Origin: Epithemia pelagica
Lineage: Eukaryota > Protista > Bacillariophyta
Assembly (NCBI GenBank): GCA_946965045.2
Contig: OX337234.1
Span: 248,001-312,000 of the forward strand
Length of the DNA: 64,000 bases
Direction of reading: 5' to 3'
In this document: piece by piece, positions 1-12,400 of the stretch
How positions within the stretch are numbered: the first letter of the stretch is position 1
How the letters are laid out: each line of letters opens with the position of its first letter
Notes under the pieces: model-generated
Database searches by the model: none
Seen by the model: only the letters and a program-made list of their open reading frames with translations
What the model was told of the DNA's origin: nothing
Program-made: the position numbers and the translations under genes

Positions 1-2
1 CA

Positions 3-3000
3 TTACCGACACTCGCACTCTACTGCTTTCCTACTCAAGAAACTGTCGATGCAACAGATGAATCAAAACATCATGATTCTCCACAAGATTATGATGCCGT
101 TTTCGATGACTCAAGTGACAACGAGTCTTTCCAAACCTCACAACAAGACCTCTCCACAACAGATAGGGCAACGATCGTCTCTACGTCATCGTCACGAGAA
201 CCATCTGACTACCCGTCGTCTAACACTGGAGACGACAGGACTATCGTCGTTGACAACTCCCAGTCACATCCACCAAGATCTCCACCATCCCAACGACGAA
301 GTAATCCTGTACCCTCACCAGTCAATACCACTACCGTTTCCAATACACAACAACTTTCTCCATCCAGAAACACACAATCTCCGAACACCGACACTCAGCA
401 CATCGCTTCCCCACCTGGTACTCTTCGAGAAAGGAGCCCACTCTCTCTCCAAAGTCCAAATCGCGATAGTGCAACATCTATAGATCCCCCGCTTTCGCCA
501 CAAAACCAGATCTCACTTCTTCAAGCAAGGATTGACTTACTGAAAGAAGAACGCCGCGAATTACTTCGACAAAAAAAAGCTCAACAGATTCAACTCAAGA
601 AAAAGGACGACAAAATGAGAAAAATGAGTGAGAAATTGAAATCAATGGAAGCTTTACAACAAGCTTTCTGCAATGTACCAAGATCGTGCACCGATGACGT
701 CAAGTCGGCACAGATTGTAGCGCACATAAAGATGGTGATTCTTAGAAGCGTGCAAAATCATGCCACTGACAGTCACAGAACAGAACTGTTCTTCAAACTG
801 CTTGTGGAAATGATGCTTTACGACGATATTCATGGGCTTCAGTTGAGAGACAAGATGATGGATACGTACCGACTCCACATGCGTCGGTATGTGTATTCTC
901 CTTTCCGAATATTGAAGGAGATGGATCTCGCGGGAGGAGTCCTCAACTACGAGGGACTCGAGATCCTTCGACGATGCGAGAACAATGGAGAGAGACATAA
1001 GCGGACGCTTATCCCGAGTTCTGGCTCTGTCAAGAAGATTGCAGCAATGATGGAGAGATTCGGCGCCGAAAAGATCCCCTTTCGAATGATCCGAAACTCC
1101 AAAGACGGAACAGAGGGGTTCTATTTCCGAGTAGCAGACATGGTTCGGGAAGTGATTCTTGCAAGAAAGGCAGTTGCAGAAGGCATGCTGAGGAATCTGA
1201 TGATGGCACAGACACTAGATGGTGCCACATTGACCAACTACACAAATCATACTCTTGCGGGGATTAAATTCAACGACAAATCCAACCCGCTAACGTCATC
1301 TCGGAACGACGTCACACCTTTGGTCTGCGTAATGGGCAGTGAAACCAAGGCAAACGTCCGAGGCATCTTTTCCGTCTTGTTTGCTGAAATCGCTGAGGCA
1401 GCGAACACCATCCTCCCACGATTACTTGGCATCCTCGCGTTATGGATCGTCACGAACTGTGACATGTCCTGCGAGTGGAAGCTTTGTGGTTGTGGGGGGG
1501 CTGCCAAGAATGCCAACTACCCGTGCACGAAATGCCCCATTCATAGCAAAGACCTGCATCTACGTGCCACTGACCAACCTTCAAAGTGCGAGTGGTGTGA
1601 GAAAATGGGTCACTTGGACGATGATCCTAACTGGGAGTGTCGGCATCATAAAATGCTGACCAAGGAGCATCGCGCCGCGTTGCAACGAGAAGTGAAATCG
1701 TTCGAAGCTGGACTACCTAAACATACGAAAGAATTGGAGACCATCTGGTCCAAATCCAAGATAACACCACATCTCGACCCGAGACTCCAATCCACTCCGA
1801 TGCAAAGAAAAGAGATTACGTCGATTCATTTCGATGTTTCAAAGGCCACTCGCAAGAGCCGTTCGACGTACACCCAGCATCTGACAAATGACCTAAAATT
1901 ACGGGGTCTGCCTTTAGATGGATCGATGATTGAGCGCCAAGAAAGGTTGAAGGTTCAATTGACGTCAGAGTGGGTTTATCGCGAATCGTCCGACGCTCTG
2001 AAGAAGTTTGGGAAAAACAATGCCAAGTCAGCATTGGTCGTCATGATGGACATGGTCCCTTGTATCTTGCATCTCGAGATACGAATGGGGATTAAAATCC
2101 TATCGATGTTGTTTAAGAGTGGAATGACAAACTCCAAACAAGGTATCCTACCATGGATGACGACTCACGATAAGTATTCGGACAAGACGGCTGCTGAGGC
2201 CTACAGAGACAAGGTCCAAGATTTGGCAAATCGGGAGATTCTCGGAACGGAAAAAAACGCACAGCAGTGGTTGTTCCCATATGATAAGGAGAAGCTACAG
2301 GTGGGGAAGGTGGTTCTCGATAACGGCCAAGTTCGGGACATGCTTCAATGCATCGTCAAGCTTGTAGTGGTCTCTATCGTGGATGGCGAACTCCAAGAAA
2401 AGTGGGTCCGCAGTGTGAGTCACTACTCGGAGGCAATCAGGCGTCTCAGATCCAAGGAGGATTTCACGGAAACACAGGTGTGGGAGTTCCAAAAACACGT
2501 GGATCTTTTTTTTAAGGAGTGGGTCGAGCTACATAACTCGGAAGGAGTGACCAATTATGGGCATATGCTTGGAGCGGGTCATATTGCCGAGTATTTACTT
2601 CATTGGAAGAACCTGGCAAGACATTCGCAACAAGGATGGGAGGGTAAGTTTATGTGAGAGCTTTGTGATCTTTACGAACCGGTTTCTCAAAGCAATACAG
2701 CTTTCAACAGTCTTTTCAAGTCCTTCTACTTCAGTAGGACGCAAAGGGGAGGGGCAGTGAACAAAGGGAAAGGACAACAGACACGCTTATTACCTATGGC
2801 AAGATGGATCCAACGACGGACTCTGTTTCTTGGGGAGTATACGGAACAGTTCATGCGAGATTACCTACTGAACTTGACAGAGACCGAACAGGAATACAAC
2901 AAGAATTGGGTTCGGAACTTGGGGGGGACCATCGAATTCGGCCAATTAATCTCTGATATGGTATCAGACGTTGCACAAGGCGAGGGGGAAGAACGAACAG

Positions 3001-3137
3001 ACCTGGTATTCGATTGGCATCTTGGTAAAGAGGATCTGTATGGCCAAACTGTCGACCAAGTGGAGAACAATATCAAACAGACTGCGGAACTTCTACGACA
3101 AATGGACGAAGATTCTGATGATAGTGATGATGAGTAA
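3..3137 (+). CDS. RAG1/Transib-like DDE transposase, 5'-truncated by the window edge; exons <3-2643 and 2701-3137
   Basis: The frame of ORF 615-2657 is open back to position 3. Motifs appear in RAG1 order: QTLDGA (D, 1218-1220), TNCDMS (D, 1461-1463) followed by YPCTKC, PCILHLEIR (H, 2070-2072), TNYGHMLGAGHIAE (H 2562, H 2580) and SQQGWE|AFNSLF (E, 2640-2642). Splicing out 2644-2700 joins it in frame to ORF 2757-3137, which ends in an acidic tail. Confidence 0.75.
2644..2700 (+). other. Predicted 57-nt GT-AG intron in the transposase gene
   Basis: GTAAGT donor at 2644 and ATACAG acceptor ending at 2700. Removal gives WEAFNSLFKSFYFSRTQRGG, in frame with the downstream ORF; retention hits TGA at 2655-2657. 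Confidence 0.7.
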
Positions 3138-3183
3138 TCTAGAAAGATGATCGTATTGTAATGATACTATGTACGAGTACTTA

Positions 3184-5073
3184 TTAGTTGTACTTATCGA
3201 TGTCATCTAAGATACGGTCGGAATGGGGACGAACCATGGTGATTTGGTGAGCGTCGTCAGCACCTTCCTTGTATAAAGGACCTGCGATTGGACGACAAAC
3301 GTAAAATGGTAGTCTGTTTGGAGGGAGGTAAATTTCCATGTCGATATAATGGGTCCTATCTTCCTCTGTGAGGTGTTCTCTGGGACACAATGTGGTGGTA
3401 TACAATTCGCCCGACACGCGGTGTTGAAGCAAGAAACGAAGACTGGGGTATCCACTGATGATTTGGACAACCTCAATCACAGACTCGTCTTTCATGAACT
3501 GATCACCGACGTAAATGCTCTTGCCCTTCACTGTTGCTTTTGCCCGGGAGTCCAGCGAAACCAATTCCAGACGGTCTTCTCTTCGGGGTTCGACAGTATT
3601 GTCATTGAGCCATTCTTCGTCACGGCTTGAATTGGTTTTGTTCGCTGGGCTCGGACTCATTGCCACGGGGGGGAGCTTGTACGGGGTGGTGTTGTCGTCG
3701 GAAAGGTCAGATGATGCATTCGATTCGCTGCTTCCATTCTTGGGGTCCGCAATAGTTTCTCCAGCCCTTGTAACATAGTAAACTGTCTCGGGGTGTTCTC
3801 CGGAATCCGAACCAGTAAGGATTGCCTGTAGATGACGTGTAGGGGCGTCACGTTTGAGTTGGTCGCTAGTGCCAATGGTATCATAGGTGTACTTTTCAAA
3901 AGCAACGGTAACACGAACCTGGTTGGGAGAAAACATGAAGTCTACTCGCTGTTGTTTCGAGCGACGTTTGAATTCTTGAGGAGACTCTGCTTCTTCCTGG
4001 CCTCGGACAACGGTCAATGTATGCCCGCGTTTGAGAGACATTCCACGGTCTCCGTCAGATAAAGTTGGACGGGATTCGGTTGAGCCATAGATGGCACTAA
4101 TACCAAGAAAGGAACGGAGAAGATGAAGGTCGTCACACGAAATGAAACGGAGGAACCCACTTTCGTACTTGAATTTCAATTTACGGCGGGTCAATTTTTC
4201 GTCCAATACCAAATAAGCCTCTGTATTAGAAATAGAGTGACAAGTGAGAGTCTGTACTGTAGAGTTTGCCAGAACGTGGATGTAGTTAAATACTTCCAAA
4301 GGAATGGCACCGATTGAAATGGATTGGGTGTGACGCTCTTCGAGAGCTCCACTTCGACGATTCATAATCTTCATGATTGCTTTTCGAAGCTGAAACAGGC
4401 CTGTCCAAATGTTCTTATGCAGGCATCGAGGACAGACGATTAGATCGTCGGGGTCTCGCTTTACATAGTCCGTAGGGAAACAACGGACTTCTTCATCTTT
4501 GATAGGAACTAAACGAACCACTCCGCCGATTTTCTTTTGCTTGTATCGAACAACGTAAACATTCCGCATTCCTTCGGCCCAGGAGTTCTTGGGATCTTGC
4601 AAGTCATGGAGGTTGAAGACGAAAGCAGGGTACATGATTTCAGTCTTGTAGGTGATTGGGTGGCTGCCGTCGATAAAGACAGATGCTTTGTAGAGTTCAA
4701 TGCATTGAGAACCGGGGCCGTGTTCGATGGGAGTAAAGTCATGATCGGGGATTTCGGGGTGGCATTCGAGTTTTTTCTTGGGAAATAAGGGGAAAAACAA
4801 GGAAAGGGCAGGTGCTCCTGTTTCATCGTTGCGTTCGATGCGAGACACGGTTGTGGTGAAATGGTCTTGCTTGGGGAGAAGAAGGTGAGCAAAGGTTTCC
4901 AATCTGAAGGAGTCTTCCATGTGCGGCACATAAAGCGGACGGTTGAAATCAGAATCAGAGGTAGTCGGCATCGTGATTGTCTTGTTGTCTTCAAAGGAAA
5001 ATTGTTGTGAAGAAGAGAGTGGGTGGGTTGATTGTTGATCGTCTTTACGTTCTGGTACATTGGTTCCGTTCAT
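3184..5073 (-). CDS. 629-aa protein of unknown function, convergent with the transposase; probable element-encoded partner
   Basis: Long uninterrupted ORF with globular-looking sequence and an S/N/D-rich linker. Its stop lies 46 bp from the transposase stop. No domain recognised. Confidence 0.75.
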   Translation of the reverse strand: MNGTNVPERKDDQQSTHPLSSSQQFSFEDNKTITMPTTSDSDFNRPLYVPHMEDSFRLETFAHLLLPKQDHFTTTVSRIERNDETGAPALSLFFPLFPKKKLECHPEIPDHDFTPIEHGPGSQCIELYKASVFIDGSHPITYKTEIMYPAFVFNLHDLQDPKNSWAEGMRNVYVVRYKQKKIGGVVRLVPIKDEEVRCFPTDYVKRDPDDLIVCPRCLHKNIWTGLFQLRKAIMKIMNRRSGALEERHTQSISIGAIPLEVFNYIHVLANSTVQTLTCHSISNTEAYLVLDEKLTRRKLKFKYESGFLRFISCDDLHLLRSFLGISAIYGSTESRPTLSDGDRGMSLKRGHTLTVVRGQEEAESPQEFKRRSKQQRVDFMFSPNQVRVTVAFEKYTYDTIGTSDQLKRDAPTRHLQAILTGSDSGEHPETVYYVTRAGETIADPKNGSSESNASSDLSDDNTTPYKLPPVAMSPSPANKTNSSRDEEWLNDNTVEPRREDRLELVSLDSRAKATVKGKSIYVGDQFMKDESVIEVVQIISGYPSLRFLLQHRVSGELYTTTLCPREHLTEEDRTHYIDMEIYLPPNRLPFYVCRPIAGPLYKEGADDAHQITMVRPHSDRILDDIDKYN

Positions 5074-5280
5074 GGATCAAGGGGTCCGAGATCGTCTATG
5101 CATTGGAGGTAGGTTGGATGGAGGCAGTACCGGTAAAGAAAAAGTGAGAAGAAGTTCGTACCGTTGATAAAAAAAAGGTTAAATGTTGTACGTGGTTTAA
5201 GTCACAGTTTCGGTGTCTAGAGTTGGTTGTTTAAGAAGAAATTTGCGCGCGGGCACGTAGAAAAGGTGCGCCGGTATGGT

Positions 5281-5329
5281 TGGGGGTACGTTTTGGCACG
5301 TGTAGGTGAGGGAAATTGGTACCGAAGTG
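5281..5329 (-). repeat. Candidate right terminal inverted repeat
   Basis: The minus strand reads CACTTCG-25 nt-GCCAAAACG inward from 5329. A 5'-CAC start is typical of Transib TIRs and RSS heptamers. The partner end is not visible. Confidence 0.3.
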
Positions 5330-5384
5330 CTCCTATTGGAAAAAGAGGATACACTTCAATAAGTTAGAATAACAAATAGAGATC

Positions 5385-8300
5385 ATGAGTTCTGCAGCAC
5401 AATTCACAGCGGCCAAGGCCATGGGGCCACAGTCGCAACGATACGGAAATCAGTACTCTCGTTGGCCAAAGAAGAGTTGGAAGAAGCGTTCAGGTTGGAG
5501 AAAGATGGACCTTTCGGTCATCTTTGAGTCCGACATTGACTGCCCCATCTGCAGGGCCAAGGCAAGAGGAATGGCCATCCCTCATCGCCCTCACCACCCC
5601 AGATGTAGCAAAAACACAACAACAAGGGGCAAGGGAATGAACGATGGAAGAGGAGCAGAGGTAGTGGCCTCAGAAAAGGCCCAGGCTGCCCATGCCAAAG
5701 CAATCCGCAAGCAACTTACCAGTGCAGAGAGATTGTCCGCCTCCAATGTCACACAGGAGGCACTCAACACTTTCATGGAGCATCGTCCAAATTGCTCGTC
5801 GAAAAAAGCAACGACAAGAGACGCTGAAAATGAAAAAACACAATCAACTACGGAGACTACGGCAACGGAAAGTTCTACCGTTGGTGGCGAGGAAGGCGTG
5901 TATGTTCCAACAGCCGAAGATTTCAAGTTTGAGGTAATTATGCGTGTGACAGCAGTACCTACGGAGGTGCATGTCCCACGTGCTGTGCATGCGTTGGCGA
6001 GTTATGTGACCGACACGTGCCTTGGTTCTAAGCGTTGTGTTGAGAATTTGAAACCTTTCTTCACTAATATTACCGTTACTGTACCCCCCATTGCCGACAA
6101 CACGAGTGCTTTGTACGACTCGATTGTGGGACAGGAACTCCTGGTTGTTGATTGGGAGCTGTTTTTCCCCAGTCACCACTTGCGTTGTCCTCGTTGCCGG
6201 GGTAATCTCCAGCGTACGCGATCGAACTTTTCAAAAAACAAGTCCCTTTTCCCCATTTTCGCCATATCTGGTCCCCCAAAGTATGCAATACTTATGGGAT
6301 ACAAGTGTGCCGGGTGCTCGGCTGCCTTCTATGCGAATGATGGAGAATTGCTCGCACGACTGCCTCCCTACATGGCTATGTGTTACCCAGTGAAATCCAA
6401 GTATTCTAGAGGAACATCGCATCTAGCTAAAGATGCTACGAGGATTATGGAAGCATCAATGGTAACCTATGGCAATGGGGATTACATCAGTCGGATGCTA
6501 TATGAAGGAATCAACACCTACTATGAAGACAAGACAATGAGATACTATTCTTATTGTGCTGCTACAGGAAAAGAATCAGAAGACTACGTGCAAAAGGATG
6601 GTGAGTTTCTGGTTCGCTACCCACCTTTAGGCGAGACAATCCGCCAGCTATATGATGATGGAGCTAGCTCCGAATGGCAACCCTGGATGGTGTCGGACAA
6701 TGAGAGAAACACAAGAGAGATTCAAGGGGTTAGATGCCAGCACATGTTTGCTCACGACCACACCCACCAGGTAGTGAAAAATTATCCAAGACGCCTCAAT
6801 GCAGCTGCAATGTGGACCATGGCAACAGAGGCAGGAGAAATTGCTTGTGCAGTGTTAGTGCACGACACATCAGCACTCGAGTTTGCACATGCTGCGGAAC
6901 AAGTGCTGAGACGTACCGGGTTTTGCCCCAAGGCCATGTACTCTGACACATGGCCTTGTGGCAAGGATTTTTGGTTGTTGTTGGTTGATGACTTGGAGGG
7001 CCGTCTTGGCCTTTTCCATTTCATACAGAGGATCACCAAGACGCTCAGACAACGGCACATTGACTTTGGGATAGCCATGAAGGATTTGTTGGATGCAATC
7101 TACGAGTACCATCCTGAAGACTTGGAGAAACTTGTTGGTTCTTTGAAAAATGGAACCATGTCAAGCTCCAAGAAACAATACACAGACGAAGAGATCAGTG
7201 AAATGATGGGAACAAAGACCTTTCGACAGAGGTACTCAAAGAACTTACGGAAGATTATTCGGGGTGGCGATACCATTGTCCTCAAGTTGGAGGAGTGGAA
7301 GTGCAAATACAAGTGCACTTCCACTCCTGGCAAGCCACCAGCACGAGGCCGATTGGATCCACACTCCAATCAACCTCTTTTTACGGCCGAAACACATCAA
7401 GCACTGGAAAACTGTAAAGAGAAGGCAAAGTTCCTTGCTGATCCCTTGCCCGTGGAGAAAATGTATCGTGAGATACCTCCATCACCAAGATCAAGCAACC
7501 AGCTGGTGGAGTACGTACCTTTGAGAGGAGAGAGTAAGCTCGAGAGCTTTCATGACAATTTGACGCATTTTGCCAACTGTGGCATGCGAGAAACTCTCGC
7601 AGATGCTTTGAATTTGGCAGGCACGGCCCAGTATAACAGGGCAGTTTGTCACAAGATGAGAATCATGACGAAGTCTCAAGAAGAACGTTCAGTGGTGCCT
7701 GCAGGATGGGAAATGGTGGTGAGTTTTGGTAACGCATGCAAAACAAACATGATCAATATACTTGCCTCGATGTCTGGAGCTTCTCGTCCTCCCTTTCCAG
7801 AGGTTGAGAAGCTTCCAGAAGATACAGGAGAACGGTTTTTCTCCGAGTACCTGGAAACGAGAAAAGAAATCACGCAACAAGTTCCAAAGCATCCACTCAA
7901 CGATCGATGCCAGTGCCGAAAATGTGCGAGCAACAAGAAGAGGTTGCCGCATGACACGTCCATTCCATTGTTGGGTTTGGCAGAGGAGGAGTCAGAGGTC
8001 GAAGATGAAATCCAACAACAGGACAGCGAGGAGAATCCAGCCAAAATACAACAACCAGAGACACAGCCAGAAACACAACAACAGACACGGCAAGAAACAC
8101 AACAACAGACACAACAACAAGAAACAGCACAAGCACAGGCAATCAGTAGCAATAAGAGAAAGGAAAGAGAGCGAGAAGAAAAAGAGAGCGACGATTTGGA
8201 TGAGAACAACACCAGCAACAAAAAGCAAAAGGTTACAAACAACAGCGAAGCCTTACCAACAACAACGATGGCAGCAACAAATCAATCAGCAGCGACAGTG

Positions 8301-8717
8301 CAGGATCAACAACAACAACACAAAGAGCCTCAAAATGCAGCAAACAGGACACCTGCAATGGCAACAACAGCAAATGGGTTGGTGGTACTGCAATCGACAA
8401 CAACAACAACGACAACAAGACAGAAAAACCAACCTGTCAACCCGTACAAGCAAAATCAGCAACGGCCAACAACACTCCCCGATCAACAGCAATACCCCTT
8501 TGCATTCAACAGCAATCCCCATGGCTGGGGTGGTCTTCAATCCGTCCCGAGATGTATGCCCACCTTTCCTCCCTTCGGACCACCACCTCGTGTCCAGACC
8601 CAGTTCTGTTGCGTCAAGTACATGAAGTACTGCGTAGAACGAGGGAAAGGACGTCCACCCCATGACCGACGCTGCCCCAAACGAGCCTTGAACAAGGCAC
8701 CATCTTCATTCTCTTGA
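5385..8717 (+). CDS. 1110-aa zinc-finger/DDE transposase-like protein, copy 1
   Basis: Cys/His clusters (CPIC..HHPRC; CPRC..YKCAGC; CQCRKC; C-terminal CC..H..C). Candidate D-D-H-E core: AHDHT, YSDTWP, GLFHFIQRI, RGESKLESFH. Q/T/E-rich tail. Confidence 0.65.
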   Translation: MSSAAQFTAAKAMGPQSQRYGNQYSRWPKKSWKKRSGWRKMDLSVIFESDIDCPICRAKARGMAIPHRPHHPRCSKNTTTRGKGMNDGRGAEVVASEKAQAAHAKAIRKQLTSAERLSASNVTQEALNTFMEHRPNCSSKKATTRDAENEKTQSTTETTATESSTVGGEEGVYVPTAEDFKFEVIMRVTAVPTEVHVPRAVHALASYVTDTCLGSKRCVENLKPFFTNITVTVPPIADNTSALYDSIVGQELLVVDWELFFPSHHLRCPRCRGNLQRTRSNFSKNKSLFPIFAISGPPKYAILMGYKCAGCSAAFYANDGELLARLPPYMAMCYPVKSKYSRGTSHLAKDATRIMEASMVTYGNGDYISRMLYEGINTYYEDKTMRYYSYCAATGKESEDYVQKDGEFLVRYPPLGETIRQLYDDGASSEWQPWMVSDNERNTREIQGVRCQHMFAHDHTHQVVKNYPRRLNAAAMWTMATEAGEIACAVLVHDTSALEFAHAAEQVLRRTGFCPKAMYSDTWPCGKDFWLLLVDDLEGRLGLFHFIQRITKTLRQRHIDFGIAMKDLLDAIYEYHPEDLEKLVGSLKNGTMSSSKKQYTDEEISEMMGTKTFRQRYSKNLRKIIRGGDTIVLKLEEWKCKYKCTSTPGKPPARGRLDPHSNQPLFTAETHQALENCKEKAKFLADPLPVEKMYREIPPSPRSSNQLVEYVPLRGESKLESFHDNLTHFANCGMRETLADALNLAGTAQYNRAVCHKMRIMTKSQEERSVVPAGWEMVVSFGNACKTNMINILASMSGASRPPFPEVEKLPEDTGERFFSEYLETRKEITQQVPKHPLNDRCQCRKCASNKKRLPHDTSIPLLGLAEEESEVEDEIQQQDSEENPAKIQQPETQPETQQQTRQETQQQTQQQETAQAQAISSNKRKEREREEKESDDLDENNTSNKKQKVTNNSEALPTTTMAATNQSAATVQDQQQQHKEPQNAANRTPAMATTANGLVVLQSTTTTTTTRQKNQPVNPYKQNQQRPTTLPDQQQYPFAFNSNPHGWGGLQSVPRCMPTFPPFGPPPRVQTQFCCVKYMKYCVERGKGRPPHDRRCPKRALNKAPSSFS

Positions 8718-9109
8718 TTGACCTGAATACCTGCATGACAAACAACAAAAAGAAAAATTCGTAGTGAGTAACATCGTAGCAAAAAGAATTATGACAAGAT
8801 CTTGTGCGAGGTGCAAGCAGTTCCGATTGTGATGCGAAGCACAGACTGGATACGCCTCATCACATGCTACGTAGAACCACGTGAAAGGTCATCGGATGGT
8901 CGGGAGGATTGTACCAGTGTAGAATGTCGTTTCAATAACAAAAAGGTGCTGAAACGACATGAAGGACTTAATCGTTTTGGAGGGGAAGTGCCTTCTCCCC
9001 TCTGAGGGAAGCTTGGAGCTTCCTAGAACATTTCATACGTCAGAGGAAACAAACGTGAGACTGCGAGCAATACGCGGATCGATTTCATGAAGGAATCTGA
9101 CTTACGGAA

Positions 9110-9171
9110 TCTCCTTCTTCTCTCCTTCTCTCTCCCCCTCCTCTCCCCCTCTCCTCTGCCTTCTCCCCCCT
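9110..9171 (+). repeat. 62-nt polypyrimidine (CT) tract near the end of each array unit (also 13215-13276, 17320-17381, 21425-21487)
   Basis: Only one purine in 62 nt. Confidence 0.9.
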
Positions 9172-9400
9172 ATTTTCGCTCGGGGGTGTTAGTTTCAAAA
9201 GGCAGCAATATGATTGGGTTAGAAATGTCGTTTCACAAAAAATCACTTAGGAAACAAATGTCGTTACAAGTGTCTTACCGTGTCCCGGGAACCCATCGAA
9301 TCACGGACAAAAAACATGGAGGGAAGATTCCATCAGCCGATCCGGTCGGTCCTTCACGGTCGCCCATGGCATGGCCAAGTCGACCATTGCGACAAGTCCT

Positions 9401-9440
9401 CTTCTGACCATCTCATGACCCTTTTGAGCATGGTCAGAAG
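9401..9440. repeat. Inverted repeat at array junction 1
   Basis: CTTCTGACCAT-CTCA [TGACCCTTT] TGAG-C-ATGGTCAGAAG: perfect 11-bp arms plus 4 more bp with one bulge. Confidence 0.85.
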
Positions 9441-9489
9441 CCTGGAAAAGAGGATACACTTCAATAAGTTAGAATAACAAATAGAGATC

Positions 9490-12400
9490 ATGAGTTCTGC
9501 AGCACAATTCACAGCGGCCAAGGCCATGGGGCCACAGTCGCAACGATACGGAAATCAGTACTCTTGTTGGCCAAAGAAGAGTTGGAAGAAGCGTTCAGGT
9601 TGGAGAAAGATGGACCTTTCGGTCATCTTTGAGTCCGACATTGACTGCCCCATCTGCAGGGCCAAGGCAAGAGGAATGGCCATCCCTCATCGCCCTCACC
9701 ACCCCAGATGTAGCAAAAACACAACAACAAGGGGCAAGGGAATGAACGATGGAAGAGGAGCAGAGGTAGTGGCCTCAGAAAAGGCCCAGGCTGCCCATGC
9801 CAAAGCAATCCGCAAGCAACTTACCAGTGCAGAGAGATTGTCCGCCTCCAATGTCACACAGGAGGCACTCAACACTTTCATGGAGCATCGTCCAAATTGC
9901 TCGTCGAAAAAAGCAACGACAAGAGACGCTGAAAATGAAAAAACACAATCAACTACGGAGACTACGGCAACGGAAAGTTCTACCGTTGGTGGCGAGGAAG
10001 GCGTGTATGTTCCAACAGCCGAAGATTTCAAGTTTGAGGTAATTATGCGTGTGACAGCAGTACCTACGGAGGTGCATGTCCCACGTGCTGTGCATGCGTT
10101 GGCGAGTTATGTGACCGACACGTGCCTTGGTTCTAAGCGTTGTGTTGAGAATTTGAAACCTTTCTTCACTAATATTACCGTTACTGTACCCCCCATTGCC
10201 GACAACACGAGTGCTTTGTACGACTCGATTGTGGGACAGGAACTCCTGGTTGTTGATTGGGAGCTGTTTTTCCCCAGTCACCACTTGCGTTGTCCTCGTT
10301 GCCGGGGTAATCTCCAGCGTACGCGATCGAACTTTTCAAAAAACAAGTCCCTTTTCCCCATTTTCGCCATATCTGGTCCCCCAAAGTATGCAATACTTAT
10401 GGGATACAAGTGTGCCGGGTGCTCGGCTGCCTTCTATGCGAATGATGGAGAATTGCTCGCACGACTGCCTCCCTACATGGCTATGTGTTACCCAGTGGAA
10501 TCCAAGTATGCTAGAGGAACATCGCATCTAGCTAAAGATGCTACGAGGATTATGGAAGCATCAATGGTAACCTATGGCAATGGGGATTACATCAGTCGGA
10601 TGCTATATGAAGGAATCAACACCTACTATGAAGACAAGACAATGAGATACTATTCTTATTGTGCTGCTACAGGAAAAGAATCAGAAGACTACGTGCAAAA
10701 GGATGGTGAGTTTCTGGTTCGCTACCCACCTTTAGGCGAGACAATCCGCCAGCTATATGATGATGGAGCTAGCTCCGAATGGCAACCCTGGATGGTGCCG
10801 GACAATGAGAGAAACACAAGAGAGATTCAAGGGGTTAGATGCCAGCACATGTTTGCTCACGACCACACCCACCAGGTAGTGAAAAATTATCCAAGACGCC
10901 TCAATGCAGCTGCAATGTGGACCATGGCAACAGAGGCAGGAGAAATTGCTTGTGCAGTGTTAGTGCACGACACATCAGCACTCGAGTTTGCACATGCTGC
11001 GGAACAAGTGCTGAGACGTACCGGGTTTTGCCCCAAGGCCATGTACTCTGACACATGGCCTTGTGGCAAGGATTTTTGGTTGTTGTTGGTTGATGACTTG
11101 GAGGGCCGTCTTGGCCTTTTCCATTTCATACAGAGGATCACCAAGACGCTCAGACAACGGCACATTGACTTTGGGATAGCCATGAAGGATTTGTTGGATG
11201 CAATCTACGAGTACCATCCTGAAGACTTGGAGAAACTTGTTGGTTCTTTGAAAAATGGAACCATGTCAAGCTCCAAGAAACAATACACAGACGAAGAGAT
11301 CAGTGAAATGATGGGAACAAAGACCTTTCGACAGAGGTACTCAAAGAACTTACGGAAGATTATTCGGGGTGGCGATACCATTGTCCTCAAGTTGGAGGAG
11401 TGGAAGTGCAAATACAAGTGCACTTCCACTCCTGGCAAGCCACCAGCACGAGGCCGATTGGATCCACACTCCAATCAACCTCTTTTTACGGCCGAAACAC
11501 ATCAAGCACTGGAAAACTGTAAAGAGAAGGCAAAGTTCCTTGCTGATCCCTTGCCCGTGGAGAAAATGTATCGTGAGATACCTCCATCACCAAGATCAAG
11601 CAACCAGCTGGTGGAGTACGTACCTTTGAGAGGAGAGAGTAAGCTCGAGAGCTTTCATGACAATTTGACGCATTTTGCCAACTGTGGCATGCGAGAAACT
11701 CTCGCAGATGCTTTGAATTTGGCAGGCACGGCCCAGTATAACAGGGCAGTTTGTCACAAGATGAGAATCATGACGAAGTCTCAAGAAGAACGTTCAGTGG
11801 TGCCTGCAGGATGGGAAATGGTGGTGAGTTTTGGTAACGCATGCAAAACAAACATGATCAATATACTTGCCTCGATGTCTGGAGCTTCTCGTCCTCCCTT
11901 TCCAGAGGTTGAGAAGCTTCCAGAAGATACAGGAGAACGGTTTTTCTCCGAGTACCTGGAAACGAGAAAAGAAATCACGCAACAAGTTCCAAAGCATCCA
12001 CTCAACGATCGATGCCAGTGCCGAAAATGTGCGAGCAACAAGAAGAGGTTGCCGCATGACACGTCCATTCCATTGTTGGGTTTGGCAGAGGAGGAGTCAG
12101 AGGTCGAAGATGAAATCCAACAACAGGACAGCGAGGAGAATCCAGCCAAAATACAACAACCAGAGACACAGCCAGAAACACAACAACAGACACGGCAAGA
12201 AACACAACAACAGACACAACAACAAGAAACAGCACAAGCACAGGCAATCAGTAGCAATAAGAGAAAGGAAAGAGAGCGAGAAGAAAAAGAGAGCGACGAT
12301 TTGGATGAGAACAACACCAGCAACAAAAAGCAAAAGGTTACAAACAACAGCGAAGCCTTACCAACAACAACGATGGCAGCAACAAATCAATCAGCAGCGA

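Follow-up and report, generated by a model that had tools for sequence, protein, structure and literature searches.

DNA transposons of the CMCT clade, which takes in EnSpm/CACTA, Mirage, Chapaev and Transib as well as Plavaka, ESTA and Lanisha, have in common a DDE triad together with a C(2)C pair and an H..H pair placed between the second Asp and the Glu; the elements mostly end in 5'-CA..TG-3' and make duplications of 2-5 bp (TA in ESTA), with a trend to 2-3 bp in the CMC group, and the ESTA transposases are linked to RAG1 only by HHpred (Kojima, 2025, PMC12730594). Transib elements make 5-bp duplications and carry a 38-bp repeat with a CACAATG heptamer, the first three bases always being CAC (Kapitonov & Jurka, 2005, PMC1131882). 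An active RAG1L-RAG2L transposon, also with 5-bp duplications, was cloned from the stramenopile alga Aureococcus anophagefferens, and Transib-like proteins are reported from bacteria, fungi and plants (Tao et al., 2022, PMC9435367). The locus analyzed here lies at the left end of a 64,000-nucleotide stretch of Epithemia pelagica DNA (assembly GCA_946965045.2, contig OX337234.1, positions 248,001 to 312,000 of the forward strand; hereafter the window), in which positions 3-3137 had been predicted, from the letters alone, to encode an intact transposase of the RAG1/Transib clade in a diatom genome. The results support an intact DDE transposase gene at 3-3137, as far as the window shows, and the preferred reading, to which a probability of about 0.62 is assigned, is that the gene belongs to a diatom transposon that is autonomous and makes up a lineage of its own within the CMCT clade. 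Membership in Transib is unproven and is contradicted on the testable defining features.

The features of the transposase gene are given below in window coordinates. Conservation counts refer to 87 family representatives of at least 550 amino acids, counting only rows with a residue at the column; a second set is a 50-sequence alignment that reaches down to 21% identity.

3..2643, forward strand: exon 1 of the transposase gene (visible-product residues 1-880), its 5' end cut by the window edge and frame 3 open from position 3; codes for a linker rich in Ser, Pro and Thr, for a coiled coil and for the RAG1-like core as far as the candidate catalytic Glu
936..2642, forward strand: part whose predicted structure matches both the RAG1 core (residues 474-965 of the mouse protein) and HzTransib (35-438) in VIA-align and Foldseek
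1218..1220, forward strand: D406 (QTLDGA), candidate for the first catalytic Asp, in strand beta-1 of the model (E196-205); 87/87 rows
1461..1463, forward strand: candidate catalytic Asp 2, D487 (TNCDMS), right after strand beta-4 of the model (E277-282); 86/87 rows
1524..1535, forward strand: C(2)C pair, C508 and C511 (YPCTKC), counterpart of RAG1 C727/C730 (ZnC2); 86/87 and 85/87 rows
1587..1646, forward strand: extra Cys/His cluster, C529, C532, C546 and H548; C532 and C546 invariant, C529 and H548 at least 90% conserved (50-sequence alignment)
2061..2072, forward strand: C(2)H motif, C687 and H690 (PCILH), counterpart of RAG1 D792/H795; C in 79/80 and H in 81/81 rows
2562..2582, forward strand: His pair H(5)H, H854 and H860 (NYGHMLGAGH); 75/77 and 74/74 rows
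2640..2642, forward strand: candidate catalytic Glu, E880 (GWEAFN), last codon before the intron; E in 71/71 rows
2644..2700, forward strand: intron of 57 nt, GT..AG, phase 1, directly 3' of the candidate catalytic Glu codon
2701..3137, forward strand: exon 2, with the codons of the AFNSLF helix, of a conserved region at the C-terminus and of an acidic tail; TAA stop at 3135-3137
2706-2708, forward strand: Asn three residues after the Glu, N883; N in 58/66 rows

The open frame at position 3 implies that the gene extends past the left edge of the window, and comparison with the model of paralog P0007, which is 96% identical, places about 195 more N-terminal residues upstream; the spliced product visible in the window is 1025 amino acids long. 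The intron has a GTAAGT donor at 2643/2644 and an AG acceptor at 2700, and removal of its 57 nt joins ...SQQGWE to AFNSLFKSFYF... with the frame kept to the TAA. Its position is confirmed by homology: the gene of paralog P0002 lacks this intron, and its product aligns with the spliced product over 887 residues (47% identity) without a gap at the junction. Many other paralog gene models end exactly at GWE, the intron point, as expected if a prokaryote-style gene caller met the same intron. A search of sequencing runs for RNA evidence turned up DNA contigs only. Upstream of the window, the family N-terminus (P0007:60-160, alignment consensus) has a conserved motif of Cys and His (PCS..FCxxC..CxAxH), after which come a low-complexity linker and a coiled coil with weak matches to TMF_DNA_bd. 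The Cys/His motif and coiled-coil region may form a DNA-binding or dimerization part of the transposase, and in having them within a protein of about 1200 amino acids the diatom enzyme differs from RAG1 and Transib.

All five ordered motifs that the original prediction listed were found, in the order claimed, in one spliced frame. The three acidic residues and the CxxC/His-His set that it named proved near-invariant in the family, and the Asn that it named after the Glu is N in 58/66 rows; the spacing of the His pair needs correction, as H(5)H exceeds the H(4)H of RAG1 by one residue. The 50-sequence alignment shows no variation at the two Asp, the two Cys and the two His, and conservation of at least 90% at the Glu; this near-invariance, there and across the 87 representatives, indicates that the motifs are not due to chance. 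The second Asp is separated from the Cys pair by 21 and 24 residues, against 19 and 22 in RAG1, and H860 from E880 by 20 residues, the same distance as from H942 to E962 in RAG1, where an Asn also follows the Glu by three. The extra CCCH cluster, which lies just 3' of the C(2)C pair in a poorly modeled loop, is possibly a second zinc site; no counterpart is known from RAG1.

An AlphaFold2 model was obtained for the residues encoded by 615-2642, with a mean predicted local distance difference test score (pLDDT) of 79. Its secondary structure, beta1-beta2-beta3-alpha-beta4, has D406 in beta-1 and D487 right after beta-4, which are the canonical positions in an RNase H-like domain. Foldseek against the PDB returned 45 matches at E<=0.001, all of them RAG1, BbRAGL or HzTransib (best 2e-7), so that the structure search led to the proteins named in the original prediction and not to an unrelated fold. 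In VIA-align the model superposes on mouse RAG1 with Z 19.9 (model residues 108-676 on RAG1 474-965), on HzTransib with Z 19.8 and on BbRAGL with Z 18.5, the match spanning the dimerization/DNA-binding, pre-RNase H, RNase H, ZnC2 and ZnH2 modules; E880, the last residue of the model, aligns at RAG1 962-965. The P element transposase (THAP9 family) and Hermes (hAT) are alike in having an RNase H-like DDE core with a large insertion domain, but they score Z 12 and ∼7 against 20 for RAG1 and do not have this kind of zinc-ligand pattern.

The fold is less discriminating than the PDB result suggests. Because RAG1 and Transib are the only CMCT members among solved structures, a PDB search returns them for any member of the clade. 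In libraries of predicted structures the template modeling (TM) scores differ little: a rotifer cluster is at 0.54, a Mucoromycota cluster at 0.53, a plant Transposase_21 (CACTA) cluster at 0.51 over 451 residues, RAG1 clusters at 0.48-0.50 and an arthropod cluster, partly annotated as Transposase_21, at 0.48. A search of AlphaFold DB clusters gave mostly uncharacterized proteins, with RAG1 at rank 25, and the accessions of the matches suggest animals, fungi and Naegleria as sources. These comparisons of models indicate that a RAG1-like architecture is not exclusive to Transib, since a CACTA model appears to fit about equally well.

The paralogs, the inverted repeats that bracket them and a near-identical copy in other flanks indicate that the gene belongs to a cut-and-paste DNA transposon of about 6 kb with two genes, the right end of which is at 5338. 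Its ends are located as follows.

About 1.19 kb upstream of the window, hence outside it: left terminal inverted repeat
5314..5338, reverse strand: right terminal inverted repeat, reading inward from the end CAATAGGAGCACTTCGGTACCAATT

Positions 1-5338 of the window are 98.9% identical to a paralogous locus, L001; the similarity stops sharply at 5338, after ...GAAGTGCTCCTATTG, and the contigs of three DNA runs branch at the same position (a loose end in 3/3). The L001 copy has different flanks, a one-base insertion that truncates the transposase (P0007; also present in DNA run X3) and a partner gene interrupted by 2.6 kb of inserted DNA, and on account of this frameshift and nested insertion the window copy is the intact one of the two. 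Six paralogous units of one assembly (L001, L002, L004, L005, L007 and L009) have inverted 5'-CAATAG[G/C]AGC at both ends, with terminal repeats of about 25 bp; the elements measure 6.0-6.3 kb, or 9.1 kb in L001 with its nested insertion, and, L001 excepted, their transposases are 44-48% identical to that of the window. A copy from Seminavis (L003) and L010 have CACCAC... termini instead. In all, inverted repeats bracket the two-gene unit in eight copies, and the termini are 5'-CA..TG-3' in 8/8.

Around the seven copies whose termini are paired no direct repeat of 2-9 bp was found, except when the ends are moved inward so that they fall within the conserved repeat. A single flanking base is identical on both sides in 7/7 well-defined copies (T, A, T, A, G, T, A), for which the chance probability is ∼6e-5 by our own arithmetic, and only a 1-bp model fits all of them. 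In L010, where the repeat is only 11 bp, the flanking bases differ (A and G), so that 7/8 copies match. Such a pattern suggests either a duplication of 1 bp, which lies outside the CMCT range of 2-5 bp, or no duplication at all. Neither a nonamer nor a bipartite repeat of the 12/23 type was recognized in the ∼25-bp repeats.

At the level of sequence the family is set apart from both Transib/RAG1 and CACTA. Pfam gave no match at E<=1 for the window protein or 16 homologs, and neither RAG1 nor Transposase_21 (PF02992) at E<=10 in 50 diverse members. Among PDB sequences, neither the window protein by itself nor any of three profiles of the family reached a RAG1 or Transib chain at E<=10, and the only matches in Pfam or the PDB were coiled-coil noise. 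HMMER detects no sequence similarity to RAG1 or Transib, so that profile searching failed to bear out the original prediction, and the iterated family profile did not reach RAG1, Transib or CACTA, the members that could be checked among the best 150 of 2922 being diatom or metagenomic proteins. The features that define Transib are thus divided: the fold is present and not exclusive, and the DDE and zinc-ligand residues are present with a His spacing of 5 instead of 4; sequence similarity, a 5-bp duplication and a CACAATG heptamer-spacer-nonamer are lacking. EnSpm/CACTA fares no better, with no PF02992, termini other than CACTA/CACTG and no 3-bp duplication. Of what CMCT as a whole has in common, an invariant C(2)C pair, an invariant His pair, the latter as H(5)H, and the CA..TG termini are found here. 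The motif set on which the original prediction relied is common to the CMCT clade and is therefore not specific to Transib. Of its central claim, the intact DDE transposase with a RAG1 fold stands, whereas the clade does not, there being no Pfam or PDB sequence match, no 5-bp duplication and no CACAATG. The family is best treated as unclassified, a probably new diatom lineage of CMCT and not a Transib.

A word-based search found 25 homologs of the window protein, and the same search with a wide profile added no further members; an exhaustive profile search found 2922 representatives (50%-identity clusters) at E<=0.001, 402 of them at E<=1e-30. The named homologs, from Seminavis robusta, Epithemia clementina and a Bacillariaceae metagenome-assembled genome, bear out the proposal of a diatom genome, and all named members are from diatoms (for the profile, among the best 150 of 2922). 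One assembly holds at least 20 divergent paralogs on different contigs. The family is large, widespread and diversified in diatoms, and apparently diatom-wide. As it has no Pfam model, it is invisible to domain-based annotation of diatom genomes; a literature search, outside which Repbase entries lie, found no publication describing it. One subfamily, made up of L010 and P0028/P0197/P0198, has three copies at least 90% identical to one another, each of 1208 amino acids and on three different megabase contigs, with termini CACCACCTAGT like those of the Seminavis element. These three near-alike copies suggest recent activity.

The second gene of the transposon converges on the first.

3184..5073, reverse strand: partner gene; 629 amino acids counted from its first ATG, with 46 nt between its stop codon and that of the transposase
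4474..4920, reverse strand: BAH-like domain of the partner protein, residues 52-200, local pLDDT mostly 80-90

A partner open reading frame of 550-630 amino acids has the same place and orientation in 9/10 loci compared (L002-L010), while the tenth, L001, still has the gene but with the insertion breaking it. Identity between the window partner and its L002 counterpart is 40%, and even the Seminavis partner still aligns with it, at 19%. Pfam has no family for the protein and the ESM Atlas no whole-protein match. Its model is mixed alpha/beta and of moderate quality (pLDDT 64). Over residues 52-200 the matches are to BAH domains alone, the top 50 PDB entries all being BAH proteins (Z 7.6-9.2, 100-130 residues aligned). 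Z values of 8-9 exceed the method's background only a little, for which reason the BAH-like assignment is a lead with moderate evidence. A RAG2-like Kelch propeller was considered for this protein and rejected, since the model is mixed alpha/beta and the only consistent PDB matches are BAH domains. The partner is probably an accessory factor, perhaps a chromatin-reading one.

Much of this evidence draws the family toward RAG1, Transib and BbRAG1L: the only strong PDB matches (Z 19-20), the DDE triad, the C(2)C pair, the His pair, the C/D(2)H motif, and the second His 20 residues before and the Asn 3 residues after the Glu, as in RAG1. The elements begin with CA, as Transib does, and with CAC in Seminavis and L010, and their two genes converge, as in ProtoRAG. 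A divergent true member or sister of Transib/RAG1L in which termini and duplication length drifted secondarily would explain these likenesses. We consider it unlikely, however, because the same PDB search cannot separate RAG1/Transib from CACTA-type enzymes, a plant CACTA model fitting equally well, and because the details diverge. There is no Pfam RAG1 match in the 50 members; the distance from the second Asp to the Glu is 393 residues against 254 in RAG1; the His pair is H(5)H and not H(4)H; and the extra CCCH cluster is a further difference. The termini are CAATAGSAGC, with A as the third base in this genome, where RAG1/Transib elements have CACAATG/CACAGTG; neither a 5-bp duplication nor a heptamer-spacer-nonamer is present; and the partner is BAH-like in place of the Kelch propeller and PHD finger of RAG2. 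A RAG-like element is also known in another stramenopile, the AanRAGL transposon of Aureococcus, which, like the diatom family, is a transposon of two genes, has a transposase of RAG1 fold and comes from a photosynthetic stramenopile; AanRAGL, however, was found by sequence similarity to RAG1/RAG2 and has 5-bp duplications, asymmetric CACAC repeats and an upstream RAG2-like gene, none of which the diatom family has (PMC9435367).

The Transposase_21 matches point in another direction: the family may be divergent but belong to the CMC group in the strict sense (EnSpm/CACTA, Mirage or Chapaev). In addition to the plant and arthropod models, Transposase_21 clusters are among the language-model matches, and a C. 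elegans PHD-finger protein, which we conjecture to be Mirage-like, is among the best AlphaFold DB matches; the CA..TG termini, the apparent short duplication and the two genes would also suit a group that typically has more than one. This placement is nonetheless quite unlikely, as PF02992 is missing from all 50 members, the ends differ from CACTA/CACTG, a duplication of apparently 1 bp falls short of 2-3 bp, and the language-model score is below that of RAG1. That the gene might be a domesticated, immobile host gene derived from a transposase could be argued from its intact frame, conserved catalytic residues and conserved intron position, but it is highly improbable given dozens of divergent copies per genome, each unit bracketed by inverted repeats, near-identical copies at different loci and in different flanks, and decayed copies with frameshifts and nested insertions.

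An autonomous CMCT transposon with a lineage of its own accommodates the DDE, C(2)C and H..H residues, the CA..TG termini, the apparent short duplication and the second gene, all of which resemble CMC, Plavaka, ESTA and Lanisha, while the diatom hosts, the lack of PF02992 and of CACTA/CACTG ends, and an apparent 1-bp duplication in place of 2-5 bp separate the family from the described CMCT lineages (PMC12730594). This placement is based on motifs, termini and fold. Against it, language-model features, which also count in favor of Transib/RAG1L, put RAG1 clusters first (0.91; 174-182 of 256 features shared) over Transposase_21 (0.87; 138 shared). A bolder proposal is put forward tentatively, namely that the family is an undescribed CMCT lineage of superfamily rank, defined by a ∼1200-residue RAG1-fold transposase, CAATAGSAGC termini, a 1-bp duplication and an obligatory convergent accessory gene of BAH type. 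If that were so, it would represent an independently reached functional parallel to RAG1 and the histone-reading RAG2.

In the mechanism proposed here, the transposase would be a CMCT-group DDE enzyme with an RNase H-like domain, in which D406 on beta-1, D487 after beta-4 and E880 on a late helix would form the active site and a large insertion, situated after the second Asp and before the Glu, would be braced by a zinc site of C508/C511 and H854/H860. By analogy with RAG1, Transib and hAT, the enzyme would bind the ∼25-bp terminal inverted repeats (5'-CAATAGSAGC...) and then nick at the element ends; the element would be released, possibly through hairpins on the flanking DNA, and joined to its target with a very short stagger.

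The family adds a large diatom group to the transposases of RAG1 architecture, and that architecture is not diagnostic of Transib. The original prediction had presented a stramenopile lineage as a novelty for this clade, a premise that was out of date, as the stramenopile RAG-like transposon of Aureococcus had already been reported (Tao et al., 2022, PMC9435367). This family alone does not shift the origin of V(D)J recombination. Both RAG-like elements of stramenopiles and Transib-like proteins of bacteria, fungi and plants had been published before. If true, a 1-bp duplication and a BAH partner would widen the mechanistic range of the clade, and a second, independent association of a RAG1-fold enzyme with a chromatin-binding partner would bear on the origin of the RAG1-RAG2 partnership.

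Several minor observations concern the copies and their surroundings. In each of three DNA runs one contig leads from position 1481 straight to 2590 and leaves out 1108 nt; the match is only 21 letters long on either side, and the long tails are unlike. This junction may reflect an internally deleted or divergent copy, or an artefact of the assembly graph. The 2.6-kb insertion that breaks the partner gene of L001 (L001:15440-18053) has imperfect inverted repeats starting TGTAATTACACTATG... and a possible 4-bp TTGT duplication, and a CACTATG close to its end is similar to a Transib-type heptamer. At L001:987-6533, about 3 kb upstream of the left end of the L001 copy, there is a polyprotein gene of Copia type (RVT_2), and MULE and DDE_Tnp_4 genes lie near L005 and L006; with such neighbors the copies sit in transposon-rich DNA. 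Two bases (5339-5340) past the right end of the window transposon, another element begins at 5341, with a contig depth of 2400-9900 compared with ∼100 for the transposon, or 25-90 times as deep in the three DNA runs, indicating that the element from 5341 onward is a high-copy repeat.

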